A DNA stretch of 64,000 nt. It comes from Macrostomum lignano (lineage: Eukaryota). Below, in pieces: positions 11,606 to 54,530 of this stretch. Every line of letters begins with the position of its first letter. Positions within the stretch are counted from its first letter, which is position 1. A program made the position numbers and the translations under genes. The stretch is from assembly GCA_002269645.1 (NCBI GenBank), contig NIVC01000834.1, forward strand, positions 371,649 to 435,648. The letters are read 5' to 3'. Below the pieces are notes generated by a model. The model was given only the letters and a program-made list of their open reading frames with translations, was not told the origin of the DNA and did no database searches.

Positions 11606-14600
11606 TCAGTCCGAGTCCGAACCCGATGAGATTTTCGGCACCGCCACCTCGGCGTCCTCGTCATCATCGTCGTCGCTGGACAGCACCGCGGCGCGTCGTT
11701 TTGTCGGCGACACGTTAGCGGCACCCGCGGCGGTGACAGCGACAGAATCGGCATCAGTAGCGGGTGCCACCGACGCCTCTTCGTCCGACTCCGAGCCGGA
11801 TGACAGCAGCTTCGAGCGCTGGACTCGAGACGCGACGCCCGTGTCCGAATCAGAGTCCGAGCCGCGACCTCGGCCGCCGCGGCCAGCTCCGGAATCGTCG
11901 CCGCTAGACGAACCGCCAGAGGACGAGTCGCCGCCACCGCCACCACCACCGCCGAAGATGCTGGCGGCTGTGCGAGCGGCCTCAGACGACATTTTCGATT
12001 TGCGTTTGTTGCGCTTCTGCTGCTTGACCCTGGCTTTGGCCTTGGCTTTGGACGACTTCTGCTGACGCTGCCGTTTGGCAGAGGACTCTGTGGTCACCTT
12101 GGACTGCCTGCAGAGGAATTGCGCCGGCACAGTGGCATCTGGCTATGTTAGTCTCTTCAGAACAGGGCTCGGCAAACTCCAACCCGCGAAGCCTATTTAT
12201 CCGGCCCTCGGGTGCTTTGAAACTTTACAATAGCAATTCGGCATTGCCTCTTCTCAGCTCTCTTTTCTCTAATCTCGTCTCCTTTTCACCTCTTCAGCCT
12301 CCTCTCCTCCCCCTCTCTTTCCTCTCCCTTCCTCTCCTCTCCCCTCGTCTCCACTCTCCTCTCTCTAGACTACACTCTAGCGCTAGATTCTACGAGTGTA
12401 TCTAACCGTTAAGTTTAAAATAGTTTACCGACTACTGGTTCAGACGGTTAAAAACACATTTAGTATACCAACAACATAAACTACGACTCTATAATCTCTA
12501 TATAGTTCCTAGTGTACAGCGAACAAAACAAAATACCGCGCCAATCCGTTACAGCACCCGGGTTCGATTCCCTACGCAATCATCAATAATGTTGGCTCGT
12601 GCAAAAACTGCTGACCTGGGGCAGGTGCAATTCACTTGTCACTTGCCTAACAATGAGAATATCAGGGCCGCTGTGCACCCTGCGTGAGAGTGGGCCTGCC
12701 TACCCCGCAAAACTGCTTGCCTCATCGGTGGCTGCGAGTGGACTGTCACCTTTGCAGCAGTTGTCCCGAGCCGCCCATGACAGCAAATCAACAAACCTGC
12801 GCTTCCGCTTGCGACTCGCCGCACCGCCGCTGCTTCCGTCGTCGTCGTCAGACAGATCTGAGGACGAGGAACCTGACGAATCCAGCGTCGGGACGGTCCT
12901 CGGCGGCGCGGCTGGCGGCGATGACTTCTTCGACTTGCCGCCGCCGTCGCCGCCCTCCTGACCATCCTCTTCGCCAGACGAGGACGAAGACGACGAGCTG
13001 CCGCTGCTGCTGCTGACGAAGGCGCGCGATTTGACGTTCTCGCGCTGCCGCTTCGTCAGGCCGTCCTCGTCGTCGGCGGCGTTGGCCGAGGCGGCCTGTT
13101 GGCGACGCCGCTGCTTCGACTCGCCGCCGCCGCCGCGTCGACGCTTCCGCTTGCCGCCGCCCTCTTCGTCGCCGCTGAGGTCGGCGGCAGCGGCGGAGCG
13201 TCGGCCACCTTTGCCGGAGCTGCTCGGAGGCTCCGCCATGTGCACCAGCGGCTCCTCCAGCAGCTTGCGATTCCGCTCCAGCACCAGCCGGCGGGCCTCA
13301 CGGATGGCCTGCTCGCGCTCAGCCTCGCGCTGTCGCCGCTCCTCGGCCTCGCGCATCTCCTGTTCGCGCATAGCGGCCACCTTGGCCGCCTGCTCCTCCC
13401 TGGCCGCCCGTTCTCGCTCGTCCAGCAGGCGCGCCCGACGGACGTGATAATCGGCCTGGCGCAGCAGGTCCGCGCAGGCCACCGACTCGCGACCGGCGCC
13501 TGGGAAACTGACGCCGCCGCTGCTGGTGCCGCTAGCGGCCGCCTCGGCCAGCCAACGGAACGAGCGCTGGGCCAACTTGAGATCCTCAACGGCGGCTTGC
13601 ACCTGGGCAGGTGATAGCGCGAATTTGCTATAATACTACTGATCTCAGAAGTAGAAAAACTCATTTGCTAATAAAAATTAAAATATAGTAAACTATATCT
13701 GTCAATGGCTTCCTCAAAAGGCTCATTGGCTTTACAATTGGCAAATCAGCAGTGGCGTATAAAGGGATTTTTTTGGAGGGGGTGCAACCCTAAGGGGCGG
13801 AAATATTTGGTCATAGTGGGCACCCCTGTCTCTTGCTGGGCGCCCTGTCTCTCGGGTGGCCGCCCTGTCTCTCGGGTGGGCGCCCTGTCTCTCGGGTGAG
13901 CGCCCCTGTCTCTCGGGTGAGCGCCCCTGTCTCTCGGGTGGGCGCCCTGTCTCTTGGGTGGACGCCCGTCTCTCGGGTGAGCACCCCTGTCCCTGTCTTC
14001 TATGCCGGTGGATGCATAGAAGAGATGGCAAAAGTTGAGCACCTGTCATTCGTCCACCCCCTCTGCGTACGCGGCTCACCTGAGCATACGAACTCTTCTC
14101 GTCCTGCAGAGTGACAGAGGCCAGCCGCTGCTGCACCAGAGCCAAATTATAGATCACGGTGTGGTCGGCAGGATGGGCGTGCCTGGCCCTGAGCAGCACA
14201 GTTCGGCACTGGCGCAGCTGGCCGGACTTGAAGTACGCCCTGGCCAGGTACTGCAACAGTTCCAGATTGTTGTGCCGGTGAAACTTTTTCATACAATTCT
14301 CGTACATTTGCACGGCCGCCACAAATGATTTCTGTTCGACGTGAATGTGCGCGATGTTGATCCACACGTCTGCGAAGTCCGCGGTGGCTTCCCGAACCTG
14401 CGGACAGGAGTTCAATAGAACTTGTACAGATTTATAACTAGCTTTAATTTTTAGTCCTAGTTAAATAAAGCTCACTCTGCTTCAATTTAGTTCACTCCAA
14501 ACTCAATCTAGCTCACGCTAATTGAATCTAGTTCACTCTAGTTAAACTTATTTCACTCTAATCAAATATACTTTACTCTAATTGCATCCAGTTCACTCTA

Positions 14601-17600
14601 ATTGAATCCAGTTCACAATCTAGTTCACTCTAATTGAATCCAGTTCACAATCCAGTTCACTCTAATTGAATCCAGTTCACTCTAATTGAATCTAGTTCAC
14701 TCCAAACTCAATCTACTACATTCTGATCGAATATAGTTCACTCTAACTGAATCTAGTTTACTTTAATTGAATCTAGTTCACTCTAACTGAATCTAGTTCA
14801 CTCTAACTGAAACTAGTTCACTCTAAACTCAATCTAGTTCACTTCGAATTCAATCTACTTCTCTTTAAGTCACCTCACGATGGTGCTAACGCACTTTACA
14901 TGCTTGCAGTTTACTCACATTTAGTTTAGCAAACTTTCTCTCAACCCAGTGCATAATTTAAAGAACAATTTATCGAATATATTACAGAAGTCAGCCTTAG
15001 GCCCTAGTTACCTACAAACAGCTCACCTGAGCAAACACGTCCCTAGCCTCGTTGATATAGCCCTTATGCGCCAGCACGCAACCGATGCCGTGGGCGGCCC
15101 AGATATTTCTCGGATCCTGTCTGAGCACAGATTTGTACATGCTCAGCGCCCGCTCCTGGTGCCGGCGCTCTTTGTCCTTGTCGCGAGCCATCTGATGATG
15201 CAGCGTCTGCAGCCAGATGTTGCCAAGGGCAACGTGAGCGTAGGCGTCGTTAGTGTGCGCCGGCTGTTGAATAATGCGCTCGAATTTCTTCTGAGCCGGG
15301 CCGTACTCGTGCTTGCTCATGTGCAGCATGCCGATTAGGGTCCAGGCGTCCGGGTGCTCCTGGTCCACCTGGCGATTGGGTGCCGATATGTATCGAAATT
15401 TAATGTTGTAATTAGTGAAGTGGGAAATCCTCTATACACTGTCTGATCTAAGAATATACTTGCTTTGCTTGATATGCATGAAATAAATAATAAGTACATC
15501 TAAAACAAGATTCCCCAGAGCCCGCCATTATCGAGAGATTATGCCGATATGTATTGAAAGAGTTAATATGTTTGCGAGATTTCTATATTTAGCTGATATG
15601 TACCCCTAAGCCTAAAATTAACCTTAGATGCTGCATCACCTGTTTTGCCGATATGTATCGAAATCCTAATAACTTTACATCCTACTCCAAAATGGCAGCA
15701 AATCTTACATTAAGCGCATCCTTGAACCAATCCGAAGCGCTGTAGATCTGGCCTCGATCTCTGGCCATGCAGCCAAGCCTCAGGTAGCAATCGGCATAAT
15801 TGGTGTGCTCCCTAAGCACGGATTTGTACAGTAGCTCGGCTTTGTCGTGCTCGAACACAGTCTCGTATAGGCGGGCCAAATTGTACCGAACCGTGACAGT
15901 GATGGAGCCGTAGTAGCGCTCGTCTGTCTGTCGCTCCCGTTCGCAGTAGGCCAAAGCCTGCGGGCATCATGGGTTGCACTCACGATTGAGCTGGTCTGAA
16001 CGTCTGGGCAACATCAGAAATTAACTTAACACCTGGAAATCCGGGACTGGGAGGGTAGCAACCCAAAACACCCAAAACAGGGTGGCAACCAAGCAACCCA
16101 AAACACCCGAGGTGGCAACCAAGCAGCCCAAAACACCTGAGGAGCTGACAGGGTGGCAACCAAGCAACCCAAAACACCCGAGGTGGCAACCAATCAACCC
16201 AAAACACCTGAGGAGCTGAAAGGGTGGCAACCAAGCAACCCAAAACACCTGAGGAGCTGACAGGGTGGCAACCAAGCAACCCAAAACACCTGAGGAGCTG
16301 ACAGGGTGGCAACCAAGCAACCCAAAACACCTGAGGAGCTGACAGGGTGGCAACCAAGCAACCCAAAACACCTGAGGAGCTGACAGGGTGGCAACCAAGC
16401 AACCCAAAACACCCGAGGTGGCAACCAAGCAACCCAAAACACCCGAGGTGGCAACCAAGCAACCCAAAACACCTGAGGAGCTGACAGGGTGGCAACCAAG
16501 CAACCCAAAACACCCGAGGTGGCAACCAAGCAACCCAAAACACCTGAGGAGCTGACAGGGTGGCAACCAAGCAACCCAAAACACCTGAGGAGCTGACAGG
16601 GTGGCAACCAAGCAACCCAAAACACCTGAGGAGCTGACAGGGTGGCAACCAAGCAACCCAAAACACCTGAGGAGCTGACAGGGTGGCAACCAAGCAACCC
16701 AAAACACCCGAGGTGGCAACCAAGCAACCCAAAACACCTGAGGAGCTGACAGGGTGGCAACCAAGCAACCCAAAACACCTGAGGAGCTGACAGGGTGGCA
16801 ACCAAGCAACCCAAAACACCTGAGGATCTGACAGGCCTAGAACATAGACTGTAATAGTACGATTCCAACCTGTTGGTAGCACTGTATAGCCTCCTGATGA
16901 CTGCCATTCTGGAAGAGCAGAGAAGCCATATTATTGAGTATCTCAGGCGGCAGATCCACCTGCACCTGCTCCTGCAGCAGTTTCACGGCAGTCTTGTAGG
17001 CAGCGAGAGCCTCCTGCGGTTGAGGCTGCTCAAGAATCTGGCCATACTCAATCCAGGCTTCCACATCGTCAGGAAACTGATCCGTAACCTGCTTGAGGTA
17101 GTTCCTAGCCAATGTTCGCTTAGCCTGATCCTTGCTCTGACTGTAGATGCTGCCAAGAATTTTCAGCGTCTCATAGTTGCTAGGCGACGCTTTGAGCACT
17201 TTTTCAAATGCAAGAGCGGCATTGTCCTGATCCCGACGGTACAGGTACATTTGGCCAAGGCCGAAGAATGGCAGAATGAAGGTTGGGGACGCGAACTGGG
17301 TGCTCTGATAGTAGTATTGAAAGGCCTGGTCAAAGTCGCCCTGTACGTGGTAGGCTCTGGAGTAGTTGGTGGGTTGTTTTGTATTGAAACACACTTATTA
17401 TTGTCATCGATTTTTTTTAAATGAGGATCATTATTTAACAACCTAATGATCCCAAAATGAGAATTTCATTTAGGCATAAGTTTATTTCGAGATGGGGATC
17501 AAACCAATAAGCGTCGAAGTTATCCCAAAATGAGGATCATTAACTGACCATCGATTTTATCCCCCAAAATGAGGATCATTAACTGAGCATCGATTTTATC

Positions 17601-20600
17601 CCCCAAAATGAGGATCATTAACTGAGCATCGATTTTATCCCCCAAAATGAGGATCATTAACTGAGCATTGGTTTTTTATCCCAAAATGAGGATCATTAAC
17701 TGACATTGGTTTTTATCACAAAATGAGGATCATTAACTGAGCATCGATTTTATCCCCAAAATGAGGATCATTAACTGAGCATTGGTTTTTTATCCCAAAA
17801 TGAGGATCATTAACTGACCATTGGTTTTTATCACAAAATGAGGATCATTAACTGAGCATCGATTTTATCCCAAAATGAGGATCATTAACTGAGCATTGAT
17901 TTTATCCCAAAATGAGGATCATTAACTGAGCATTGATTTTATCCCAAAATGAGGATCATTAACTGAGCATAGAATTTGTCCCAACCTGGCCAGCTGAAAG
18001 CAGCTCTCAGCTCGCATAGCCTCATTATCGGTGTTGTGAAAGGCGTGCAAAGCGAGGCTCTGCACCTTGGCGTACTCCTTCTTGTAGAAGAAATGATTAG
18101 CCAGGTGGTTCAGCACCATGCTGTTGGTGGGGTCGATCCGATAGGCTCTGGACAGGTGCTCCACGCCTTTGCGAATCGATTCGGGCGATTTCTCATTCAA
18201 CTCGGTGATCGCCACGCCAACCAGGGCGCCCACGCAGTCCGGATCGAGCGCCAGTGCGCGCTGGAAGGCGGCTTTGGCGCGGTCGGTTCTGCCCAGGCGG
18301 GCGTAGCAGTGGCCGAGGCCAAGGCGGACATCGGCTGGACAGGTGGGGCAGACCTGAGCGGAACGGGATCGGAGAGTTTTTAGCCTGTGATCCCATAAAT
18401 CTATTAACTGTGGGTCTATCAATCAATCAATTAATCAATCTGTGAGTCTATCAATCCATCAACCTGTGAGGCTATCAATCAATCAATCTGTGAGTGTATC
18501 AATCTATCAACCTGTGAGTCTATCAATCTACCAACCTGTGAGTCTATCAATCTACCAACCTGTGAGTCTATCAATCTATCAAACTGTGAGTCTATCAATC
18601 TATCAACCTGTGAGTCTATCAATCTATCAACCTGTGAGTCTATCAATCTATCAAACTGTGAGTCTATCAATCTATCAACCTGTGAGTCTATCAATCTATC
18701 AACCTGTGAGTCTATCAATCTATCAAACTGTGAGTCTATCAATCTATCAACCTGTGAGTCTATCAATCTATCAAACTGTGAGTCTATCAATCTATCAACC
18801 TGTGAGTCTATCAATCTATCAACCTGTGTGCCTATCATATCAACCAGTCAAAAAATCTTCTAAATTCGAGTTCTCAGTCCATCCACCCTCACCAGCCTCA
18901 CCTGCAGCGCTTTGGTGTACAGACCCAGGGCCTCCTTATACCGACGCTGATTAAACGCGATGCAGGCCTCGCCAAGAATAGCCGGGACATTGTCAGACAC
19001 CTGGTTGAGCACGTATTTAAACTGCTGCTCAGCTTGGCTAACATTCTCACCCTCGTAAAGAAAAAAGAATGCCCGACCGAACAGATGCCGAACGTCCATC
19101 ATGTTGATGCGATCGGCGCTTGTGTAGAGCACAGTGGCCTGTTGTTATGGGGTAAGAAATATTTAACACGAGATAAAATGTATATTTAGTAGATAACACG
19201 ATCAACATTATAGCTACTTATGTTTAGGAGTTCACACGTCTGATTCCATCACTGCCTAACACATTTACCCTGTTCAGCAGATCACATATTTGTTTAATAC
19301 ATTAATAAATCTAAATAGTCAAGTCTAACAGGTTTTGTATAACTATATTTAACAGTTCAAGCAGTTGCCTAAAAGATCACAACCCATATCTAACAGAACA
19401 AACGTCCCCGTATCTAACAGGTTAAATCCTCATATATAACAGGACACACACCATATCTAACAGGACACACACCATATCTAACAGGACACACTCCCATCTC
19501 TAACAGGACACACACCATATCTAACAGGACACACTCCCATCTCTAACAGGACACACTCCCATCTCTAACAGGACACACACCATATCTAACAGGACACACT
19601 CCCATCTCTAACAGGACACACTCCCATCTCTAACAGGACACACACCATATCTAACAGGACACACTCCCATCTCTAACAGGAGACACACCATATCTAACAG
19701 GACACACTCCCATCTCTAACAGGAGACACACCATATCTAACAGGACACACATCCATATCTAACAGATCCATATCTAACAGGTCACGAAACCAATATCTAA
19801 CAGGTCACGAAACCAATATCCAACAGGTCACGAAACCAATATCTAACAGGTCACGAAACCAATATCTAACAGGTCACAAAACCAATATCTAACAGGTCAC
19901 GAAACCAATATCCAACAGGTCACGAAACCAATATCCAACAGGTTACGAAACCAACATCTAACAGGTCACGAAACCAATATCTAACAGGTCACGAAACCAA
20001 TATCTAACAGGTCACGAAACCAATATCCAACAGGTTACGAAACCAACATCTAACAGGTAACGAACCAATATCTAACATGTCACGAAACCAATATCCAACA
20101 GGTCACGAAACCAATATCTAACAGGTCACGAAACCAATGTCTAACAGGTCACGAAACCAATATCCAACAGGTCACGAAACCAATATCTAACAGGTCAGGA
20201 AACCAATATCTAACAGGTCACGAAACCAATATCTAACAGGTCACGAAACCAATATCTAACAGGTCACGAAACCAATATCCAACAGGTTACGAAACCAACA
20301 TCTAACAGGTCACGAAACCAATATCTAACAGGTCACGAAACCAATCTCTAACAGGTAACACGCCAATCGTCAAGCAGATTACACACTTTTCTAACAAGTT
20401 ATTATCTAGCTTGATACTTGCATAATGGTTAAAAGTTTGTCTAACAGTTCTCATACTAAACAGAGACGACACCGCAACTGTTCCAGATCTTGATCTCACC
20501 TTAGTAAACAGCTCCCGTTTTAAATCGCGGTTTTTTTCCCTGTGCGCACGTTGAACATAGTAAGCGGCCAGCGAATCGTAACAGCGCATTTGATCTTCTT

Positions 20601-28412: not shown

Positions 28413-30520
28413 TTAAGTGATAATTTTTGGCAGCCAAGCTTCAAATTCGATGTCTCGGAAAGTTATGCTGCGGTTGGTTCTCCACGAAGACACGTCAAAG
28501 TATTTCACGTATTCATAGCTGCAGTAGGGGTAACTCAATCGCAAGTAGTTCTCAGTGCTGTTCTCCGTACTCTCTGCATCAGTTATGCAATAGCCTTCAT
28601 TAGGAAATGTGATTTTTATGTCCTCAACGTCCTTTGAGCAGCAGTCTTTCTTTCTGATAAAAGTGAGGGAGCCAAAGTTCTCCGGCTTTTCAAGAAAATA
28701 CCGCACCGAAACCCCGGCTGGAATGGTGGCGAACGTTTCTGGGTTTGAGTCGGTGGTCTGTCGGCAGATGTCGCTTCCAGGTCCTTTTTCTGGACAGGTC
28801 AGCTTGGCCTTGCCTGACATTTATTGGAAGAGCAGCTCAATGTAATGAACAGATGTTAAAACTGGAGTACAGCCCTCCTGCGAATATGTATTTTAATTAT
28901 GTACAGGGGCGTCGCCATGGATTTTATGGTGGGGGGGACAAAGCCAAGAATTTTACATGTACATAACTAAATTCCTACATGTACATTATTTGGAGAATCG
29001 GTGTTGTCAGCGCTCATTTTGGCACCGCAGGAACTCATTTTGGCGCCGCAGGCACTCATTTTGGCGCCGCAGACACTCATCTTGGCGCCGCAGGCACTCA
29101 TCTTGGCGCCGCAGGGGCTATACGAGTATTTTGGCGCTCTGAAACAAAATTATTGATTTCCATAACGGGTCACAAGGTGGGGGACAAAAAGCATTCGGCA
29201 TGTCCCCCATAGGTTTTACTGCATGGGGGGACATGTCCCCCCTGTCCCCCCCTTCTAGGTGCATGGCGACGCCCCTGTTTATGTATTTTTAACAGAATGG
29301 CAGATTCAACAATAAATCTTGTGCGCAAACATTTCTACTTTTTTCAAAGAATTGAGGAGATAATAAAGCGATCGACTGCCGAAAGTTTTTCACTCGGAAC
29401 ATTAGTTGATCAGTTCAATCAGAGTTGACTCACGAGCGCAGAACAGACCGTTCACGGCGCGAGAACCGGTCTCACACAGGTCGCACTGTGTCATGCCGGT
29501 CTGAAGAGCGAGAGCAAAGTTCAAGTCGCACTTTTTGCAATCTTTCGCTCCCACGGAGTCCGAATAAGTTCCTGGCGGGCACTCGCTGCATTTCTCCTTT
29601 CCGACGCCCTTGGTCGAATTGATGAAATCGCCGGGAGGGCAATTTGGTGGCTGAGCTCTGTAGAGATCGCTGGTAGAGCTGGAGGCGACGAAGTTATCAA
29701 TTAACAAGACATTTCTTTATTTTAACACTGATTGACAAGATTATACTTATGCTATAGGCTGCCGCATCAAAAAATGCAATTTTTATACTACACACTCACA
29801 GCTTCAAAGCTTCAAATTCGATGTCTCGGAAAGTAATGCTGCGGTTGGTTCTCCACGAAGACACGTCAAAGTATTTCATTTCTTCATAGCCGCAGTAGGG
29901 GTAACTCAATCGCAAGTAGTTCTCAGTGCTGTTCTCCGTACTGTCTGCATCAGTTATGCAATAGCCTTCATTAGGAAATGTGATTTTTATGTCCTCAACG
30001 TCCTTTGAGCAGCAGTCTTTCTTTCTGATAAAAGTGAGGGAGCCAAAGTGCTCCGGCTTTCCAAGAAAATACCGCACCGAAACCCCGGCTGGAATGGTGG
30101 CGAACGTTTCTGGGTTTGACTCGGTGGTCTGTCGGCAGATGTCGCTTCCAGGTCCTTTTTCTGGACAGGTCAGCTTGGCCTTGCCTGACATTTATTGGAA
30201 GAGCAGCTCAATGTAATGAACAGATGTTAAAACTGGACCAGATGTTGCTTTGATTGGTCAATTATAAAGGAGTCAACCCAAACAAAACTGACTTACGAGA
30301 GCAGAAGATGCCGTCTACGGGTCGAGAGCCGGCATCACACAGGTCGCATTCTGTCATGCCGGTCTCAACCGCGAGAGCAAAATTCAAGTCGCACTTTTTG
30401 CACTCTCTCGCTCCCACAGAGTCCGAATAAGTTCCTGGCGGGCATTCGCTGCATTTCTCCTTGCCAACCTTTTTGCTGGAGTTGATGAAGCTGCCAGGTT
30501 CGCAATTTGGTGGCTCAGCT
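28413..30520 (-). CDS. Extracellular protein of two tandem modules, each a Cys-rich TNFR/ephrin-receptor-like (GCC2/GCC3-type) exon plus a divergent F-type-lectin-like exon; 5' exon(s) not identified
   Basis: Exons 30297-30520, 29800-30184, 29434-29657, 28413-28813 join with phases 2/1/2/1 via GT/AG sites. 'CSECPPGTYSDSVGA..CKKC...QTGMT.CDLC' is the CxxCPxGTY repeat. The second exon type has 'SLTFIRKKDCCSKDVEDIKITF...ITFRDIEFEA'. Confidence 0.7.
28904..29277. mobile_element. hAT-like MITE with internal 21-bp repeats, in an intron
   Basis: 16-bp perfect TIR CAGGGGCGTCGCCATG/CATGGCGACGCCCCTG; 8-bp TSD attatgta/tttatgta (1 mismatch); about 4-5 units of GCACTCATTTTGGCGCCGCAG. Confidence 0.85.
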
Positions 30521-31814
30521 CTGCTGGGAAGTCTGCCGCAGCTGGCGGCAGCAAAGATTGCGAATAGACAATGTCACGTTATTTGATGTTGTCCGTGACC
30601 CTTAAAAGGGCCGTTTTAGTCCCAAATGAATCGAGTCAAGTCTTGATAGCGGATTTGCGTAGCGGAGCACTTGGCATACAAGGCCGGAAACTGGCCGTAG
30701 TTGGTTATTATTGTTGAGATCAATATTCGATGCGGTTAATATCAATATAGAACTTATTGCGCTTTTGGGGCACTGGCGGCTGCAACAATGGTTTTGAATT
30801 GAAGGTGAGTTAGAGATTGTAGTTGAGTGGTAGGCGAGTGATGCAAGACGATGCAACGTGGTGAGTAACGGCGATGAGCACAACAGTGGCAGATGCGTAG
30901 TGGTGAGATTGGCGTTAGCCGTGGCAGACAGTGGCAGGCAGTGTAAACAGGCTGGTCCAGACAGAGAGAAGGAAAACAAGGCCGAGGACAGGCCGGGAGG
31001 AAGAGAGAAGCACAGATAAGGACGGGAGTGAGGAGTGCCGCCGCCAGGCGGGGGGTTTAATAAAGGAGCGCAGAGGGGGGTAGCGCGAAGCACGAGTGGT
31101 TTTCATTGGCTGGCGAGAGAACTTAAAATTATCGATCGTGCCAATTTTATACGGTCGCGAGAGAGGATAGCAAAATATACAGTGAATTAGAAATTGCCAC
31201 AAAATCGTTGGGCACTACTACAAGTAAACGTCGCAATAAACAAATGGAAAAGTTTAGTAGAAACGGTGAAACTGAAGGGTTGAAACTATGGAGAAACAGT
31301 AGTCCAACGGCCCTTTTCGGGACCACCTTAAACTGACAACGTCACAACAAAGTAAAGCTTGCATTCTCAGCATAAAAGTATGAGCAAATTATGGCACGGC
31401 TCGATTGCAAAAGAACTGAAATGTCTGAAATAGATCTAAATTTGCTATTTTTCCTCTGCGTGCTTTGGGTAAAGTTTTTTACCTCTGCATGCATGCCTCT
31501 AATTTCTGCGGGAAAGATATTTCTGGGTTAACTCAATCAGCAGGAATGCCAGACCATTTTCCTCCCGGTGGCACAACCAAAATAGGGGGAACATAATCTG
31601 GATAATTCCCCAAATTCCGAGCCGAAAAAGAAAAAAAGCAAGTTACCAGACCTCTAAACCGACCAGATATTCAACGATAATGCCAAGTCGGATTTTCTCA
31701 TAAGTGCTTCCCACAAGGGCTTTTACGAGCAGCACCAGGGTCGCGGACCTCCCGATTACGGCAGCTTGAAACTTGACAAACTTGGAACTTTGAGACTGGG
31801 AGATGTCAATTTAG

Positions 31815-32060
31815 GCACGCGAAGGTGTATTCAGCAGGCCTGTGAAGTATGAGACAGACTAGGCCTATGGGCTACGGTCTGCAATGCCTCACGCCTGCCC
31901 CCATCTTCAGCAGGTTAAGGCTGGTGGGAGTTCTGTACCCTCTATTTGCCGCTGGCAGCCGCAGACCCCCCCCACGCTGTCTCGCAAGTCGACCCAGGGT
32001 ACTCGTCCCCGCGTGTGTTCAAGGCAGACCCTAGGGCTGCTGGACAGACTGGGCTCTGAC
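31815..32060 (+). ncRNA. HDV-like self-cleaving ribozyme at the retrotransposon 5' end
   Basis: P1 GCACGCG(31815-21)/CGCGTGT(32010-16) with the G+1.U wobble. P2 CCCA(31993-96)/TGGG(32050-53). P3 GGG/CCC. L3 TACTCGT. P1.1 AC/GT. P4 hairpin 32019-32044. J4/2 CAGA with the candidate catalytic C at 32045. Confidence 0.8.
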
Positions 32061-32289
32061 GCTGGCGACCCATCCAGTGGCTTCGGCCGAACTTGGGTAT
32101 GCGGGTCTGGCTCGCCAGCCTACAGGCCGTGGTACTGCTTAACGTACCCCCTAATGCCTAAGGTGTTTGACCGTGCCGATGGGCTGGAAGACCGGGGGGG
32201 TAGTCCGGTCGCTAGCGGTCCTTTTTCTTTTTCTTTTTCTTTTTCCTCCTTTCTTTTGTGACTCAGCTCACTCCTTCCCGCTTTCAGCT

Positions 32290-33748
32290 ATGGCATCCTC
32301 CGCCTCTTTCAACCCCGCTGAAGCCGGGACCAGGGCAACTTCGGCCGGTAAATCTGGCGCCAGCGTCGCCCCACCGGGGGTAGATGGGCTCGCCGCCGGC
32401 TCGTCCGGTGAAATGCCCGCATGCGCACCCGGGCCCTCCGCGGAGGCCCGACGTGCCCGCAACCAACGCCGCAACGAGCGGCGACGGCGACTACTGGATA
32501 CTGTGGGCCGGCCACCGGCGGAGGGGGGAACCTAGGGAGGGCGAGGCTGCTGTTGGGCCGAAAGAAACCACAGCAACCCCTGACCCTCAGGATACAACCC
32601 CCGCTGGTGAGCCACCCAGTAAACCTGCTACCAGCGCGGCCGGGCCTTCGGGGACCGCTGCAACCAACTACGCCTCAAAGGTCAAGCTCCAACCGGTGGT
32701 CATCGTCTTCGGGGAAGAGCACGACCTCACGGCCGATGAGCTCGACAGTGACTGGCGCACCATTGATGCTGCGCTAATTGACCAGCTCCTGGCAGGCCGC
32801 CCTGTGAGCGTGGTCAAATCTGCCAAAACCGACGGCTGCATCTTCATCTGGTGCAACTCGAAGGAGAGTCTACGCGAGCTTCTGCCAAAGTTGAACTGGC
32901 CCAAGAAGCTCAGCAAGCTCGTCTTCGCCAGCGAGGGCGAGCGACAAAAGACCCAGCGCTTTCGCGTCTGGATCCCGGCCGGCAGTGCCATTAAGTCCGG
33001 AGATCAGCTTAGGCAGATCCTGCTAAAGCTGCACCCTGACCTCGAGGTCAACGGGCTCCTGCACCACGCCACTTCCCGCAAGGAGAAGGGGGCCACGGTG
33101 ATCCTAGGGCTCTCTGACGCCTGGGCTAAGCGCTTGCCGCCTAAGTCCACAATCCACCTTGGTCTGACTCAGCTGACCATCCTCCGCTGCGAGGAGGGGA
33201 AAGCTGACGAAGCCAAGCATGCTGAGGCTTCCGAAACCGGAACTGGGGCCCAGGCTCCTCCGGCAAAGAAGCTGAGGCAAACGGCTGACTTCAAGCCCGG
33301 TAAAGCAGTCCGCGCTGCTGAAACCGGCAATCGCAACCGCAGACCTGCTAGGAGCACCCGGAGGTCCGGTCTGATCCAGCGCGCGCTGGACCAGGCCAAG
33401 AGCCTCCGGGCGTATCGTGAGCAGGCCCGCGCTTCTCGCGCTCCACCCCAACAGCCAGAAGGCCCGGCCGTTGGTGGGGAGGCGCCGACCGACTGGTTCG
33501 AGTCTTCGACTCACCAGGAGGCTGGTGCCACCCGCATCGACCTGACCGACGAGGCGGAGGGGACGGGCAGTAACAGCACCGAAGCACGCAGGGGAGGCGA
33601 CGGTAACGTCCACGCTGGGCTCATGCCCGCGGAGGACTCCGCAGCCACCCTAACTGCCGAGGACGCTGAAACTCCCATGGAGGTCTGTGGGCCAACCACC
33701 CCTGAAAAGGAGGAGGATAACCTGCTCAACGATTCCCCAACTGCATGA
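32290..33748 (+). pseudogene. Retrotransposon ORF1 (frameshifted near 32530)
   Basis: ATG at 32290 (MASSASFNPAEAG...) reads to a stop at 32535; the rest lies in ORF 32384-33748, implying one frameshift. No CCHC knuckle visible. Confidence 0.7.
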
Positions 33749-36700
33749 TAATGATCAGCAGCCAGGGAATTCATTGCTTGCAGATTAATCTGCAACACTG
33801 CGTCGAAGCCTCGGTCAACCTTATGCGTTACGCCGAGCTCGACACGCCGGGGCTCATCCTCGTCCAGGAACCCTGGACTCTTAGAGGTCAGCCTCAGAAC
33901 GCCCCTGCCGGCTATAACTGTTTTTATACTTACCCTCGCGAGGCCAACCAGCCTCCCAGAGCTTGCATCTTTGCGAGCAAAACGCTCAGTGCGTGGCTCA
34001 GATCGGACCTGTCCAACAGGGACATCTGCGTCATCCAATCCGAGGACCTCCTTCCTGGGAAGACCACCCTCATAGCCTCGGTCTACCTACCAGGCGATGC
34101 TGCGGTCGTCCCCAGAGCCCTCGCTACGCTGGTCGAGCTCTGCTCTGCCAAAAACTACGAGCTCATGGTTGCCGGCGACATCAACGCCCACCATACTCAC
34201 TGGGGCAGCACCGGTATTAATCAGAGGGGCGAAGACCTCCTAGCCTACGTTGCCTCTGCAACTCTGGGTCCACCCCTACTTTTGACAACGGACGCCACGC
34301 TCGCAACACCCAGACTCTACCAGAGTACTGGGGCGTGGTGGGTGCTTCCAGCGTCCTCACTCTCTGATCACAATTTCATTTCCTTCAACCTGATGGCCGC
34401 GCGTAGCGCAACTCGTGTTACGTCGAGACGGAACGCCAGAAACACTGATTGGGAAACCTTCGGGCTCACTCTAAAGGAATTCCATCGATCTCCTGGCCAA
34501 CCATTCACGATCACGTCATGCCAAGAAGCGGATGAGTGCGCGACTGTGTTGACAGAAACGCTAACCGCCGCCTTTGAGGCATCCTGCCCTTTAAAAGCCT
34601 ATAAGGGGAAAAAATCCGCGCCGTGGTGGAATCCCGAGCTCGGCAACCTCCGTCGCAGAGCTAAGAGACTCCACCGCAGAGCTACTAAAACTAAGAGCCC
34701 AGCGGACCAAACCGCCTATCATGAAGCAATCCATGAGTTTAAAAGGCAGGTTAGGAATGCAAAAGCTCAAAAATGGCGACAATACTGCGAGGAGCTAGAG
34801 GGCTCACGCCCCAGCTCCAGAATTGTGAAAGCACTTACGCTGGACAAAATGTCTAACCTTTCCTCGGTGAAACGCACCGACGGTACGTCCACGGACAACC
34901 CAGGGGAAACGCTTGATGTAATGCTCACTGCGTTTTTCCCCAACGAGCCAGCTAACCCGACCACTCCAGATCACTCGGAGGAAGGTCACGCCCTAGCTGC
35001 CTCTATCATCACGGAGGACCGCATCGTGAGAGCGGCTAACTCCTTCAAACCTTTCAAAGCACCAGGACCCGACGGCATCGTACCTGCCCTTCTAAGAGAG
35101 GCGGTTAAATGCACAGGTTTCCTGCGTAAACTTTGCAGCCTTCTTTGGGCGTGCATCACGCTTGGTTATGTCCCGCAGGCATGGACCGAGGCAAAGGTGA
35201 TTTTTATCCCTAAGCCAGGCCACCCGGACTACCATTCTATCAAATCCTTCAGACCGATCAGTCTGACCTCCTCCCTGGTCAATCTGATGGAGAGACTGGT
35301 GCTGTGGCGCCTTCTTTCCGTAGAGCTGAAGAACAAGCCTCTCAGCGAGAACCAGCACGCCTTTCGGGCGGGTCGCTCCACTGAAAGCGCGCGGCACGTC
35401 CTGGTCGATAAACTTGAGAAGGCCGTGCTTGGTAGCGGCTTCGCTCTGGGAATCTTCCTGGACATCATTGGCGCCTTCGATAACGTCCTCTTCGAGGCGT
35501 TCCGAAGAGCTCTTTGTGAGAGGCAAACGCACTCACATCTCACCAGATGGATCATGTACATGATCAGCCATCGCACGGCCACCGCCAGTCTGCTGGGCTA
35601 CAAGAGGACGGTTCCCGTCTGCAAAGGTATCCCGCAAGGTGGGGTGCTGTTTACAGTTCTCTGGAACATGTTCATCGATGAGCTCCTTCGGGATGCTCGG
35701 CCTGACCCCATTCTGAAAGTTGGATATGCGAACGATGTCACCGCAGTGGCATCTGGTCCGTCCCCTGACGTTCAAGCTAAAGCCAAGAGGGCCCTCGCAG
35801 TCCTCGCACAACTGCGCAGGGCTGTCGGCACCACCTGGGGGCTTACCCCCAAGCGCCTCTGGTGGATCTACACTGCAATGGTTAGGCCTGCCATCTCGTA
35901 TGGCGGCCTGATCTGGGCTAGCGCTCTGCAGATGAAGACCTGCCTGAAGGCTCTCAGGAGAGCGCAAGGGCGCGCATGCCGCATGATCATGAGCGCCCCC
36001 CGTTCTTACGATGGCCTCAACGCCTTCCTCAACATTCCCCCACTGGATATCTTTGTCCGCAGGGAAGCGGCTAAGACTGCCCGCCGTCTAGCTGACGCTG
36101 GCATTCGTATCCTGCCCCATAGGGTCGTGGCTAAGCGCAAGCTCCTGCCTCAGGCCGACCTCTGCCTTAAAGACTTGAGAGACAGCGGCGGGCTCCACGT
36201 CTTACCTGACGGTGAACCCCGCACTCTCAACCTCCTTCAGCGCTACAAGCTCACCATCCCCTCTAGGGATGCTGCCAATGACCTCTGGAATTCCCAGGAG
36301 GTCCATTGCTACACGGACGGTTCCATCAAAGACGGCCACGCCGGCTTTGGGTCTGCATCATCATCAGCGACCGCGTCATTGCCACGCATACCCAGCACAC
36401 TGGCAGACTCTCCACAGTCTTCCAGAACAAAGTCCTTGCCATCAGCTCCTGCGCTGCAGAGCTGAACGCCAAGGGTACGAGAGGAAAGACTATTGTCATC
36501 CAATCCGATAGCCAAGCGGCCTTACAGGCCCTTTGCCACACCACAACGAACTCCCGGACAGTCGCCGACTGCGTCGGGCAGCTCAACCTCCTGGCCAGTA
36601 GCAATACTGCCAGGCTGAAGTGGATCCCAGGGCACGCAGGGTTTCCGGGGAACGAGCTGGCAGACACCCTCGCCAAGAGGGGCGGCTCTGGCTCTTTCTT

Positions 36701-37185
36701 CGGCCCCCCTGGTCCCTATGCCCTTGACAGTCATCAATCGTCAGATCGACGACTGGGCTGACTCCCTCCACAGGAACAGATGGGCGGGCACCCAAAACTG
36801 CCGGCAATCTCGTGCCGCGGTTCCCTGCCCGTCTCGCAGGCTCAGAAACATCCTTCTGAACCAGAATCGGAAGGATATCCGAGCCCTTGTCATGACCCTT
36901 ACTGGCCATGGCTACCTCGCCAGGCACTGCTTTCTCCGAGGTGACCTCGAGAGCGAACTTTGCCCCTTTTGCGAGTACGACAATGAAGATGCTCAGCACT
37001 TTGTTTGTCACTGCCCCTTCTTTAACAAAGACCGGCTACGCTACCTCGGGCCGAACCCGTCCATTGACGAGGTCTGCCAGCCCGACAGCATCCCACGGCT
37101 CATCCAGTTCCTTCGGGCGACTAGACGAGCCAGTTTCTTTCCAACGGAAGATCACGCTGCAGGACGGACCGGCGGACCACCCTGA
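33745..37185 (+). pseudogene. Retrotransposon ORF2: AP endonuclease, reverse transcriptase, RNase H, C-terminal CCHC; disrupted
   Basis: APE motifs (QINLQH, LVQEPW, GDINAHH, SDHNFI). RT motifs (KAPGPDGI, PKPG, FRPISL, QHAFRAGRST, GIPQGGVL, YAND instead of YADD). RNase H (YTDGS, WIPGHAGFPGNELADTLAK). CPFCx8HFVCHC. Split over three frames (33745-36465, 36306-36761, 36718-37185); the distal RT motifs appear deleted after 'ASGPSPD'. Confidence 0.9.
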
Positions 37186-38527
37186 CCGGCCCCACGCCTC
37201 TGCCTGTCTGCGGGCCTTCAGGGGCTGGCGGAATGGGCGACCCTCGCCTCCCCGCTGTGTCTACGGACCACCCTGCAGCTGAGTCAAAGTAAGTCAAGGT
37301 GTCAATTTAGAATAGAAGGAATTCCAAATCCAGCCATCAAAGATTTTCCGTGTAATATCCTTTTTCGTCATTCTTGGCAAAGATGAGTGGCCAATTTATT
37401 GAGGCGAAGGTTGCAGTGGACCGACCGAAAGCGAGGAGCATGAAGTTTCAAGTTCATATCAGATCAAGTTCATATCAGAGTAAGTCTATGTGTGATCTCT
37501 TGAAACTAGGCTCCGATATAGTTCTGCATCAGCACTTATATCTGTCGCGACGAGTTGACACTATTCCAGGCCAAAAGCGAGCCAGTACACATACATTTAT
37601 TTTCTGGGAGTTCAGTATTGTTCTATAAGTAGTGCACTCAGCGGTTTATACAAGCTCGACAGTAAATGAACCTATTGCAAAAGAGTCCTCTCTCTATCCT
37701 TGCATATATGATCAATGCGATTGAAGTCAATACTGTCATTGCTATGATTATTTGGTACTCGCTGATTTTGCACTCTGATCCTCAGCTTCTATTCCATGCC
37801 CTGCGACAGGCGCACTCTCTACTTACTTCATACCACGACTCGATCATGACAAGTAAGAAAATAGGCAGAATGGCTAATGCCCGGAATTGCTGGCCCTGTC
37901 CTTGGCTATGACCTTGGCTATGACCCTGACCCTTCTATGATCTCGAGCAATAGAAAGGAGGTGGGTTTGCTGATTGGGGGAGTGGTTGGGTGATAAGCAT
38001 GACTCAACCTAATGAGCCATCACGGGGGAGCACAGGGATCACATGGGAGGAAGGGAGGGTGCGCAAAAATTAGTGGGAAGGCCCAGGACGTGTCTACATC
38101 ACATTCGTATATGTCTTGTGCCTGTGTGTGTAAGGAAATAAAATTAACATTGAATCTTACTTTCATAAACTAAAGGCTCTAAGAAAGGCAAGACAATAAA
38201 AAAATGAGCATTAGATCCCAATTCTATCAAAAGCTACGGCAACTTTTGTTCTGAAAAATCAATTGAAAAGCTCTAATCTCCGTAATGTTTTTTTCGGTAA
38301 ACGTAAACTACGGAAACGTAGTTTTCTGACCTTCTACTTGAGTAGTCCTTCGTTCAAACGGGTTGGAGGCAGAGGATTAGCTTAATCTTCGGATTAGCTA
38401 ATTTCTATATTTTAATTTTAAAATTGTCTCTGCTTATCTCTCGCTGGCTTCTCTTAGCTATGGACCCAGCTGCTGACCATCTGACAGGAGTGAAAGTAGA
38501 AAGCTCTGGGCGATCAGTTTTTGCACT

Positions 38528-39767
38528 CCCAGATCCTAGATCCCAGATCCTAGATCCCAGATCCTAGATCCCAGATCCTAGATCCCAGATCCTAGATCCC
38601 AGATCCTAGATCCCAGATCCTAGATCCCAGATCCTAGATCCCAGATCCTAGATCCCAGATCCTAGATCCCAGATCCTAGATCCCAGATCCTAGATCCCAG
38701 ATCCTAGATCCCAGATCCTAGATCCCAGATCCTAGATCCCAGATCCTAGATCCCAGATCCTAGATCCCAGATCCTAGATCCCAGATCCTAGATCCCAGAT
38801 CCTAGATCCCAGATCCTAGATCCCAGATCCTAGATCCCAGATCCTAGATCCCAGATCCTAGATCCCAGATCCTAGATCCCAGATCCTAGATCCCAGATCC
38901 TAGATCCCAGATCCTAGATCCCAGATCCTAGATCCCAGATCCTAGATCCCAGATCCTAGATCCCAGATCCTAGATCCCAGATCCTAGATCCCAGATCCTA
39001 GATCCCAGATCCTAGATCCCAGATCCTAGATCCCAGATCCTAGATCCCAGATCCTAGATCCCAGATCCTAGATCCCAGATCCTAGATCCCAGATCCTAGA
39101 TCCCAGATCCTAGATCCCAGATCCTAGATCCCAGATCCTAGATCCCAGATCCTAGATCCCAGATCCTAGATCCCAGATCCTAGATCCCAGATCCTAGATC
39201 CCAGATCCTAGATCCCAGATCCTAGATCCCAGATCCTAGATCCCAGATCCTAGATCCCAGATCCTAGATCCCAGATCCTAGATCCCAGATCCTAGATCCC
39301 AGATCCTAGATCCCAGATCCTAGATCCCAGATCCTAGATCCCAGATCCTAGATCCCAGATCCTAGATCCCAGATCCTAGATCCCAGATCCTAGATCCCAG
39401 ATCCTAGATCCCAGATCCTAGATCCCAGATCCTAGATCCCAGATCCTAGATCCCAGATCCTAGATCCCAGATCCTAGATCCCAGATCCTAGATCCCAGAT
39501 CCTAGATCCCAGATCCTAGATCCCAGATCCTAGATCCCAGATCCTAGATCCCAGATCCTAGATCCCAGATCCTAGATCCCAGATCCTAGATCCCAGATCC
39601 TAGATCCCAGATCCTAGATCCCAGATCCTAGATCCCAGATCCTAGATCCCAGATCCTAGATCCCAGATCCTAGATCCCAGATCCTAGATCCCAGATCCTA
39701 GATCCCAGATCCTAGATCCCAGATCCTAGATCCCAGATCCTAGATCCCAGATCCTAGATCCCAGATC
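38528..39767. repeat. Perfect 14-bp satellite (CCCAGATCCTAGAT)n, about 88 copies
   Basis: No variant units seen over about 1240 bp. Confidence 0.97.
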
Positions 39768-40460
39768 TTATGGATCCTGAGATACTAACGCAGCACAGTT
39801 AAACCAAGCATGCAGTGTAAAGTAAAGTCCAAAGATATAATATTTCATATAACTGTCTTGCCTATTCATTGGGTGTGACTATGACTGGGTGTGCCTATTC
39901 ATTGGGCGAAGTTTTTTTAACTGCTCAAGCATAATTCTATTTCGGACCATTAATGTATGATAGTGTTATAACTGCGAGCGCATGTGTACAGTTCCACCAA
40001 TGACCGCCTAAAAGTTTTATGATGACTGGGACCCACATCAAATTATAATTGACTCCAATGAGGCTGAGAGGCGAAGTACTGCTTCATGCAGCATTAATCC
40101 TCAAACTCATCGCCTTACTGTGTCCACCCACATTTTTGATGCATAAAAACTAACTGATACATGTAGGAATGTATCCCACTGCGTGACGGATGTACATGTA
40201 GGAATTTGCCACGCAGAGACAAATCAATTAATTTAGTCACTGGAACCAATAGAAAACAACAGTGGGAAGGAAAATTTTCTGTTTGATCCTCCGTTCCCAT
40301 GACAACGTGGGAAATAGATTTTTGCACATCCCAAAACAGTTGAAACTGCTACAAATACAATACGTGCATGCGATCGAAAGAGACAGCAAAAATTTCACAC
40401 CGCCTGTTGGTCAGCAACTCAGTCGCACAGCCAACTTCTAATTCTGGCCTAGTGCTAGTG

Positions 40461-42418: not shown

Positions 42419-43089
42419 CAAGGGCGTCGCCTTGTATGTTATGGTGTGGGGACAAAGTCAAGAATTCTACATGTACATGTACATTAGTTTCAGAATCGGT
42501 GTTTTCAGCGCTCATTTGGCGCCACAGGCACTCATTTTAGCGCCGCAGACACTCATTTTAGCGCCGCAGGCACTCATTTTTGCGCCGCAGGCACTCATTT
42601 TAGCGCCGCAGGCACTCATTTTAGCGTCGCAGGCACTCATTTTAGCGTCGCAGGCACTCATTTTAGCGCCGCAGGCACTCATTTTAGCGCCGCAGGCACT
42701 CATTTTAGCGCCGCAGGCACTCATTTTAGCGCCGCAGGCACTTATTTTAGCGCCGCAGGCACTCATTTTAGCGCCGCAGGCACTCATTTTTGCGCCGCAG
42801 GCACTCATTTTAGCGCCGGAGGCACTCATTTTAGCGCCGCAGGCACTCATTTTAGCGTCGCAGGCACTCATTTTAGCGCCGCAGGCACTCATTTTAGCGC
42901 CGCAGGCACTCATTTTAGCGCCGCAGACGCTATATTTTGTCGCCCTGAAGTAAAATTATTGATTTCCTTAGCGGAGTCACAAGGTTGGGTGGGTGGGACA
43001 AAGCATTGGCATGTCCCCCCATAGCTTTTACTGGGGGCGGACATGTCCTCCCTGCCCCCTTGTCCCCCCCCCCGGTGGCGACGCCCCTG
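42419..43089. mobile_element. Second copy of the hAT-like MITE family, with an expanded 21-bp array
   Basis: TIR CAAGGGCGTCGCC/GGCGACGCCCCTG (12/13 match); TSD ctcaggag/ctcaggaa; about 19 units of GCACTCATTTTAGCGCCGCAG; flanking sequence alignable to 28904-29277. Confidence 0.85.
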
Positions 43090-54169: not shown

Positions 54170-54530
54170 TTAATCTCCTTTTCCTCTTTCCTCTCCTCTC
54201 CTCCCTCCTCTCTCCTCTCCTCTCCTCTTTCGTCTCCTCTCCTCTCTCCTCTCTCTTCTCTCCTCTCCTCTTTCCTCTCCTCTCCTCCCTCCTCTCTCCT
54301 CTCCTCTCCTCTTTCCTCTCCTCTCCTCCCTCCTCTCTCCTCTCCTCTCCTCTTTCCTCTCTCCTCTCCTCTCCTCTTTCCTCTCCTCTCCTCCCTCCTC
54401 TCTCCTCTCCTCTCCTCTCTTCACTCTCCTCCCCTCCAATATCCTCTCTAACTTCTCTCATCTACCTACTCTCCTCCCCATTCTCTTCTCTCCTCTCCTC
54501 TTTTTTCTGTTTCATCTCCTCTCTCCCCTA
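54170..54530. repeat. Polypyrimidine (CTCTC/CTCCT)n tract
   Basis: Directly visible; source of the Glu/Arg/Gly 'ORFs' on the minus strand. Confidence 0.95.

Follow-up and report, generated by a model that had tools for sequence, protein, structure and literature searches.

A probable HDV-like ribozyme fold at the 5′ end of an RNase H-bearing LINE from a flatworm

HDV-like ribozymes that sit at the 5′ ends of LINEs are established for R2, R4/Dong, RTE, baggins, and L1Tc, and in the described LINE families with this fold, at least some members cleave when tested (PMC3774820, PMC3185411, PMC4035085). Cleavage at the 5′ junction itself has precedents in R4/Dong, RTE, baggins, and L1Tc (PMC3774820). 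In R2 ribozymes the helices are variable, whereas the P3/L3 core and the catalytic C are fixed; the C and G of L3 are conserved, J4/2 holds "a constrained A," and mismatches in P2 are tolerated (PMC3774820). The separation of P1 and P1′ in R2 ranges from 23 to >700 nt, with J1/2 loops of 216–498 nt in silkmoths (PMC3774820). Peripheral domains within J1/2 can activate HDV-like ribozymes (PMC4908430), and in L1Tc a promoter and a ribozyme are combined in the same 77 nt (PMC3383444). In the literature covered, LINE ribozymes from flatworms are limited to two kinds, the HDV-like ribozyme of planarian R2 (PMC3774820) and the twister variants of schistosomes (PMC8501958). Our literature search for Macrostomum together with ribozymes returned one paper mentioning both, which was unrelated.

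A 5′-terminal ribozyme of HDV-like type is already known from LINEs; what is new here is the lineage, an RNase H-bearing LINE of flatworms. An earlier note, made from the sequence alone, had proposed a complete HDV-like fold at the first nucleotide of a non-LTR retrotransposon. We examined this proposal in the window, that is, the whole stretch of 64,000 nt from Macrostomum lignano that was analyzed, to which all positions refer unless a relative is named. We conclude that a selected HDV-like ribozyme fold at 31815–32060 probably defines the 5′ end of this flatworm LINE, and we hold with lower confidence that the copy in the window is itself active.

Element boundaries and the 5′-terminal fold

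The 11-mer TGTCAATTTAG occurs as a direct repeat on either side of the element, and its two copies are identical at 11/11 positions, as expected of a target-site duplication (TSD; Table 1). G31815 directly follows the 5′ copy, and an A follows the 3′ copy. Because the TSD places the boundary at 31814/31815, the start of the element is unambiguous and coincides with nucleotide 1 of P1, exactly as the earlier note had read it. The element so delimited (31815–37299, 5,485 bp) is an APE-RT-RNase H non-LTR retrotransposon, present as a single copy in the window. The earlier claim of a non-LTR retrotransposon is borne out, since the element has a TSD and an ORF1 and encodes domains for APE, RT, and RNase H. 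Pfam detected Exo_endo_phos_2, RVT_1, and RNase_H in ORF2 and returned no match for ORF1 of the window element. With two ORFs and an APE-RT-RNase H-Cys/His domain architecture, the element has the coding capacity of an autonomous LINE, and the nearest named proteins are Macrostomum lignano gene models with 90–92% identity over the RNase H part, which points to this flatworm or a close relative as the likely source.

The reading frames of the window copy are disrupted by at least three frameshifts, whereas those of a relative, L001 (described below), are intact. The frameshift in ORF1 was placed between about 32384 and 32535, and tblastn against the intact ORF2 of L001 showed that the RNase H core (about 36364–36700) is out of frame through two indels, and a C7 run at about 36703 lies close to one of the two. 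Either real decay or indels of a long-read assembly may account for the frameshifts. The 3′ UTR of the window copy is homologous to the 3′ end of L001 up to ...AGTCAAAGT.

In the composition profile of the window the retrotransposon is conspicuous, with 54–62% GC (32001–38000) versus 33–49% in the flanking DNA. Just upstream of the ORF1 start, at 32220–32258, lies a CT-rich run, (CTTTTT)n, where L001 and a second relative, L002, carry longer, unrelated sequence; the run is a microsatellite or polypyrimidine tract of the 5′ UTR that is specific to the window. Minisatellite arrays occupy 2917–3641, 4302–4803, 5689–6472, 6834–7566, 16040–16907, 17480–17987, 18320–18900, 19408–20493, 38373–39900, 42431–43015, and 54146–54496, and the periods found in the window are 8, 12, 14, 20, 21, 23, 39, 41, and 56 nt. 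The 14-nt array that follows the element has >90 copies, and one 21-nt unit recurs at 28989–29164 and 42431–43015. Upstream of the element, two 300-nt direct repeats (28436–28735 and 29807–30106) are 97% identical and lie 1,371 bp apart. Probable host exons are represented by a TPR-repeat ORF at 13732–14415 (−) and an ankyrin-repeat ORF at 57288–58046 (+).

Table 1. Coordinates of the element and of the predicted ribozyme parts in the window
Feature	Positions	Strand	Pairing or basis
5′ target-site duplication, TGTCAATTTAG	31804–31814	+	Same 11-mer at 37300–37310
P1, 5′ strand, GCACGCG	31815–31821	+	7 bp with 32010–32016; predicted cleavage immediately 5′ of G31815
J1/2 insertion, 166 nt	31822–31987	+	Alignable among relatives; alifold
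Alternative 5′ hairpin, 3′ strand	31825–31828	+	Pairs with 31817–31820, loop GAAG; alifold of window and L001
P2, 5′ strand: extension GTCG, bulged A31992, CCCA	31988–31996	+	Pairs with 32050–32053 and 32057–32060
P3 GGG, L3 TACTCGT, P3′ CCC (active-site hairpin)	31997–32009	+	GGG 31997–31999 with CCC 32007–32009
P1′, CGCGTGT	32010–32016	+	Pairs with 31815–31821
J1/4, GT	32017–32018	+	Forms P1.1: A32001–T32018, C32002–G32017
P4 hairpin, TCAA junction motif before it	32019–32044	+	Pairings in window and relatives
J4/2, CAGAC, candidate catalytic C32045	32045–32049	+	C common to window, L001, and L002
P2′ TGGG, bulge CTC, P2 extension TGAC	32050–32060	+	Pairs with 31988–31996
Remaining 5′ UTR, conserved blocks and CT-rich run	32061–32289	+	Alignment with relatives
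ORF1	32290–33748	+	ATG 32290 out of frame with main frame 32384–33748
ORF2 (APE, RT, RNase H, C-terminal Cys/His motif)	33745–37185	+	Pfam matches; tblastn versus L001 ORF2
3′ UTR, without poly(A), ends ...GAGTCAAAGTAAGTCAAG	37186–37299	+	Homologous to L001 3′ end
3′ target-site duplication	37300–37310	+	Matches 5′ copy

At the element's 5′ end, a nested double pseudoknot with the order P1, J1/2, P2, P3, L3, P3′, P1′, P1.1, P4, J4/2, P2′ is complete in the window. The P1, P2, P3, L3, P1.1, and P4 pairings drawn in the earlier note were all recovered in place and in the canonical HDV order. P1 consists of G31815–T32016 (a wobble), C–G, A–T, C–G, G–C, C–G, and G31821–C32010, and it is not extendable to position −1. 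The base at −1 of the predicted cleavage site is G, the least favored nucleotide at this position in HDV ribozymes. P2 proper comprises 4 bp (C31993–G32053 to A31996–T32050) and is separated by a 1 × 3 internal loop from its 4-bp extension (G31988–C32060, T–A, C–G, G31991–T32057). P4 is imperfect: it combines GCAG/CTGC and CC/GG pairings, one A bulges out, and the lower stem contains mismatches. Two details of the earlier description were adjusted. C32045 indeed follows P4, but J4/2 is 5 nt long rather than the 4 nt given before; and the J1/2 insertion, estimated at ~170 nt, is indeed long, with a precise length of 166 nt, or of 171 nt when P2 is counted as 4 bp only.

Covariation, chance level, and model searches

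An ORF1 search combined with an ORF1-profile search yielded two relatives only. L001 is a 6,492-bp Logan contig (source run ERR14788467) with an intact element whose ORF2 is about 50% (BLASTP) and whose ORF1 is 32% identical to those of the window; L002 is a JGI metagenome contig with an ORF1 63% identical to the window's, and it is truncated within J1/2. Two additional relatives (L003 and L004) are 5′ truncated. The 5′ UTRs of L001 and L002 align with that of the window over their whole length, and both hold the core; the 475-nt 5′ UTR is conserved throughout, beyond the ribozyme part. The core of L001 comprises P1 GCCTGC/GCAGGC, P2 CTCAGA/TCTGAG with the extension GCCG/CGGC, P3 GGG/CCC, L3 TCTCCGT, J1/4 AG, and a strong P4 whose sequence is almost entirely unlike the window's. 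That of L002 comprises P2 CCCAAA/TTTGGG, L3 TTCTCGT, P1′ CGCGAGC, and J1/4 GT, with the 5′ strand of P1 missing.

The three sequences were then fitted to the structure by hand in an alignment of 95 columns in which J1/2 was replaced by a linker, and MAFFT left the hand-set register unchanged. In this hand-fitted three-sequence alignment, 98.8% of the cells are standard pairs, and 10 pairs have changed on both sides (two each in P1, P1.1, and P2, one in the P2 extension, and three in P4). When the 3′ partners were slid by 1–3 columns as a control, only 0–1 both-sided changes and 29–44% pairing were obtained, and none of 500 shuffles reached the observed pairing and covariation values (0/500). 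Two P1 pairs covary between the window and L001, L001 also differs from the window at both partners of each P1.1 pair, and the 5′ strand of P2 with its extension covaries in L001 and L002. P3 (GGG/CCC) and positions T1, C5, G6, and T7 of L3 are invariant in the three sequences, whose L3 loops read TACTCGT, TCTCCGT, and TTCTCGT. The covariation check proposed in the earlier note thus turned out in favor of the fold, as far as two relatives and three hand-aligned sequences go, and its claim of a complete HDV-like fold is sustained by compensatory changes in two diverged relatives together with the fixed P3 and L3 C-G.

J4/2 is less uniform, reading CAGAC in the window, CTGC in L001, and CGTG in L002. 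The C alone is shared, 4–5 nt before P2′; it is followed by AGAC, TGC, and GTG, respectively, and the A's are absent in both relatives. Typically, the catalytic C of J4/2 is followed by purines or adenosines, which dock into P3. The window copy further differs from L001 and L002 in having a P2 of 4 bp versus 6 bp and a J4/2 of 5 nt versus 4 nt. In HDV-like ribozymes the cleavage site lies at the 5′ base of a P1 of 6–7 bp, as a rule a G+1 paired as G·U or G–C. The +1 pair is G31815·T32016 in the window, G1–C194 in L001, and G·T in a more distant candidate, L059.

The chance level of such a core was determined with a descriptor whose requirements were three Watson-Crick pairs in P3, an L3 of 7 nt, a P1′ of 7 nt next to it, one or more pairs in P1.1, a hairpin for P4, C as the first base of J4/2, four or more pairs in P2, and, no farther than 400 nt upstream, a P1 whose first base is G; 100 block-wise dinucleotide shuffles of the window served as the null. 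This structure-only descriptor matched two cores in the 64-kb window versus 2.7 ± 1.5 in the shuffles, which is not significant. The second match, at 5271–5022 (−) in repeat-rich DNA, has the loop GCTAGGC without the L3 core motif; it is evidently spurious and fits the 2.7 expected by chance. Since the structure-only descriptor is at chance level, the helix drawing by itself proves nothing. The L3 form T...CG[CT] is typical of HDV/CPEB3-type cores, and once this motif was added, the present site alone remained in the window versus 0.02 per shuffled window. Furthermore, a direct calculation puts at about 4e-4 the chance of seven bases in one fixed place pairing with this P1′ when no more than one wobble is allowed.

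Covariance models gave no support. A scan of the whole window at the Rfam gathering threshold detected no HDV-type match, and neither did a scan at E ≤ 10 with the HDV, CPEB3, and drz families over 31700–32200 of the window, 1–280 of L001, and 1960–2230 of L059; these scans returned only chance matches of lncRNA, miRNA, and CRISPR-repeat-like type. The models probably miss the site because of the long J1/2, as they do not allow 166 nt, yet this is still a failed test. The HDV descriptor search recommended in the earlier note came out divided, with a unique site under the L3 motif on one side and a chance-level structural count and the silence of the Rfam HDV-type models on the other. Nor is the stability of the window RNA unusual (MFE z-score, 0.12); however, nested subsets of the ribozyme fold come within 5–7 kcal/mol of the MFE, with the pseudoknot bonus uncounted. 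Taken by its topology, covariation, core nucleotides, and position, the RNA would belong to the HDV-like class; its J4/2 shares only the C with the relatives, and the Rfam models do not place it there.

A protein-guided scan of metagenome contigs added 80 distant relatives, with identities of at most 40%. In 673 kb, the core covariance model R1 recovered nothing beyond the three sequences it had been trained on, and of these the window core had the lowest score (56 bits versus 73–76). Over the distant relatives, the strict descriptor recovered only L001 and one new candidate, at 2000–2190 of L059 (contig Ga0210364_1000041), the ORF2 of which is about 24% identical; the candidate lies 353 nt upstream of the ORF1 ATG. 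It has P1 GGTATC/GATACT with G·U at +1, L3 TTCTCGT, J1/4 GT, and P2 ACCAC/GTGGT with a 7-bp extension AATCAAG/CTTGATT. Rfam and model R1 both failed to detect it, and the antisense control for the strict descriptor gave one match in 609 kb. From its sequence, an HDV-like ribozyme in L059 is plausible but unproven.

A loosened descriptor returned mostly junk from the distant loci, including matches in 53-nt tandem repeats of L008, and these were rejected. Three such repeats form the 5′ end of this JGI contig of a distant relative (1–170), upstream of ORF1, giving its 5′ UTR a repeat- or promoter-like design unlike the ribozyme type. A DNA pattern of the conserved core had 0 matches in viral contigs and 0 in a collection of metagenome contigs that does not include L002, which fits the pattern. 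Its lone match in prokaryotic genomes (L090, 1782–1903) was discarded as ordinary coding sequence of a Solirubrobacteraceae MAG, with ~1 match expected by chance.

The J1/2 domain, predicted cleavage, and rival readings

Far from being junk, the 166 nt of J1/2 make up a peripheral domain that is conserved and structured. It holds a 41-nt hairpin (31847–31887) that is conserved in sequence, with ~78% identity between the window and L001, and that occurs in every fold, alifold and single-sequence MFE folds being in agreement. A convincing conserved helix closing the ends of J1/2, the "pinch" of PMC4908430, was not found. Near the start of the element, alifold pairs part of the 5′ strand of P1 with a proximal partner (Table 1), and an equivalent local hairpin is formed in L001 by nucleotides 2–6 with 11–15. 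Two P1 positions covary both with distal P1′ and with their proximal hairpin partner, and this three-way covariation, observed in two sequences, suggests an alternative conformer. For the 5′ hairpin, energies of −4.0 kcal/mol (window) and −8.1 kcal/mol (L001) compare with about −10 kcal/mol for the P1 duplex. As a hypothesis, the hairpin may sequester the P1 strand before or after cleavage; it could delay cleavage until P1′ has been transcribed, or it could form afterwards. That these RNAs represent a distinct flatworm-LINE subfamily of large, Rfam-invisible HDV-like ribozymes in which the P1 strand toggles between the hairpin and P1 under the control of J1/2 is a tentative extension that we consider rather unlikely. 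If it were true, the toggle would be a built-in switch that times or regulates self-cleavage or, alternatively, a means by which the 5′ end, once cleaved, is remodeled to suit translation or reverse transcription.

The presence of the cores, their position, and the covariation in two relatives suggest that the RNA is most likely self-trimmed to its exact first base. The element would be transcribed within a longer host or read-through transcript. Once made, P1′ would pair with the first seven bases of the element, P2/P3 and P1.1/P4 would stack around L3 and J4/2, and C32045 with Mg2+ would catalyze cleavage 5′ of G31815, as the established chemistry of the family predicts; in that chemistry, scission depends on Mg2+, yields a 2′,3′-cyclic phosphate and a 5′-OH, and is lost when the catalytic C is mutated. 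The element RNA would keep a 5′-OH at its exact first base, which could lead to full-length copies with a defined 5′ end. We infer, rather than show, that the RNA would cleave itself with Mg2+, that the element would thereby be released from read-through transcripts, and that it may take part in cap-independent translation.

The ends of the L001 contig also bear on this reading. The contig starts at the base homologous to G31815 (+1). Its homology to the window ends at ...AAGTCAAAGT, about position 5966, and it runs 525 bp beyond the 3′ end of the element into unrelated sequence with minus-strand ORFs (5966–6492). A start at +1 with 3′ read-through is the pattern expected of a transcript that was either 5′ processed or initiated at +1, and it is no more than suggestive.

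Among the rival readings, the one that survives best grants the family an active ribozyme and takes the window copy for a dead relic that has lost 2 bp of P2, lengthened J4/2, and broken its ORFs. The window copy may indeed have decayed, as judged from its shortened P2 and at least three frameshifts, in ORF1 and the RNase H region; the length differences of P2 and J4/2 from both relatives and the lowest R1 score of the three cores point the same way. Against this, the perfect TSD (11/11) suggests a recent insertion, all the helices are intact, with the extension giving P2 4 bp more, and R2 ribozymes tolerate mismatches in P2 (PMC3774820). The frameshifts, one of which lies beside the C7 run, could be long-read assembly indels, and the J4/2 of the window (C-A-G-A) is the nearest to canonical of the three sequences. 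We thus regard a dead window copy as unlikely.

According to a second rival, the fold is real and selected but not, or no longer, catalytic, and it serves as a structural module of the 5′ UTR, for instance in the binding of an ORF protein at integration or in internal translation initiation, while an internal promoter starting at +1 sets the 5′ end. The J4/2 region, which conserves the C alone and no A, the lack of an Rfam model match, and the conservation of the entire 475-nt 5′ UTR rather than of the ribozyme alone are consistent with such a module. A transcription start at +1 is possible, as promoter and ribozyme share 77 nt in L1Tc (PMC3383444), and it would explain the start of the L001 contig as well as cleavage does. 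However, the features retained are those of an HDV active site, that is, P3, the C-G of L3, P1.1, the C of J4/2, and a P1 ending at G+1, and it is not obvious what a promoter would gain from a P1 that pairs right up to the initial base. Moreover, every described LINE family with this fold that was tested has cleaving members (PMC3774820, PMC3185411, PMC4035085). A noncatalytic fold is therefore distinctly improbable, more so than a relic copy. Finally, a chance product, in which a permissive descriptor allowed an HDV-like drawing to be put together out of a GC-rich 5′ UTR, and for which the ~2.7 structure-only matches per shuffled window and the spurious match at 5271–5022 (−) could speak, is a very remote prospect that we regard as effectively refuted by the ten compensatory changes in two relatives versus 0–1 in the slid controls, the L3 motif lowering the expectation to 0.02 and the P1 strand lying exactly at the TSD boundary (p about 4e-4) besides.

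If the preferred reading of an active, self-trimming ribozyme is right, the range of 5′-terminal HDV-like ribozymes would include a LINE lineage with RNase H in free-living flatworms, and it would be explained how this family gains a precise 5′ end with no need of a promoter of its own. Studies on the regulation of HDV-like ribozymes would also gain a naturally occurring case in which J1/2 is large and conserved and a 5′ hairpin competes with P1. In practical terms, such split ribozymes escape curated covariance models but can be brought to light when descriptor searches are anchored on TSDs and combined with covariation.

Comparison with described ribozymes

The mammalian CPEB3 ribozyme has an L3 of the form U-N-C-N-C-G-U followed by J1/4 GU and a weak P1.1 consisting of one C-G pair and a U·U mismatch. 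L002 and the L059 candidate, with TTCTCGT and GT, would form the same weak P1.1. Unlike the present RNA, the CPEB3 ribozyme is compact and intronic, lacks a J1/2 insertion, has a J4/2 of C-G-A-A, and lies outside mobile elements. Perere-3, an RTE element of Schistosoma mansoni, is likewise a flatworm LINE with a 5′-terminal self-cleaving ribozyme for RNA processing, but that ribozyme is a twister variant rather than HDV-like, and the LINE belongs to a different clade (PMC8501958). RTE (drz-Agam-2) and baggins/LOA (Ruminski et al. 2011, as cited in PMC3774820) resemble the present case in having 5′-terminal HDV-like ribozymes of APE-type LINEs that cleave at the 5′ end; they belong to other LINE clades and insect hosts, and the Rfam models derived from drz ribozymes miss the present site.

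Another counterpart is L1TcRz, the Pr77 ribozyme of the L1Tc/ingi clade of trypanosomatids, which is also an HDV-like ribozyme and likewise opens an APE-RT-RNase H LINE with TSDs (PMC3185411, PMC4035085, PMC3383444). It cleaves at the +1 position of the element, as is predicted here, and release from co-transcripts has been proposed for it. In contrast to the present ribozyme, which is 246 nt long, includes a conserved J1/2 of 166 nt, and has a flatworm host, L1TcRz is compact, with only 77 nt, and also acts as an internal promoter, and there is no detectable sequence relationship between the two. The R2 and R4 ribozymes of animals share with the present one a double pseudoknot with a very large J1/2, a P1 that covaries between species, a variable P4, and a core conserved mainly in P3, L3, P1.1, and the catalytic C (PMC3774820). 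R2 itself, however, encodes a restriction-like endonuclease, is specific to rDNA, and often cleaves upstream in the 28S rRNA (PMC3774820), whereas here an APE-type LINE inserts at random and cleavage is predicted exactly at the junction. By analogy, the present ribozyme would thus work like those of L1Tc, RTE, and baggins, with an architecture that resembles that of R2.
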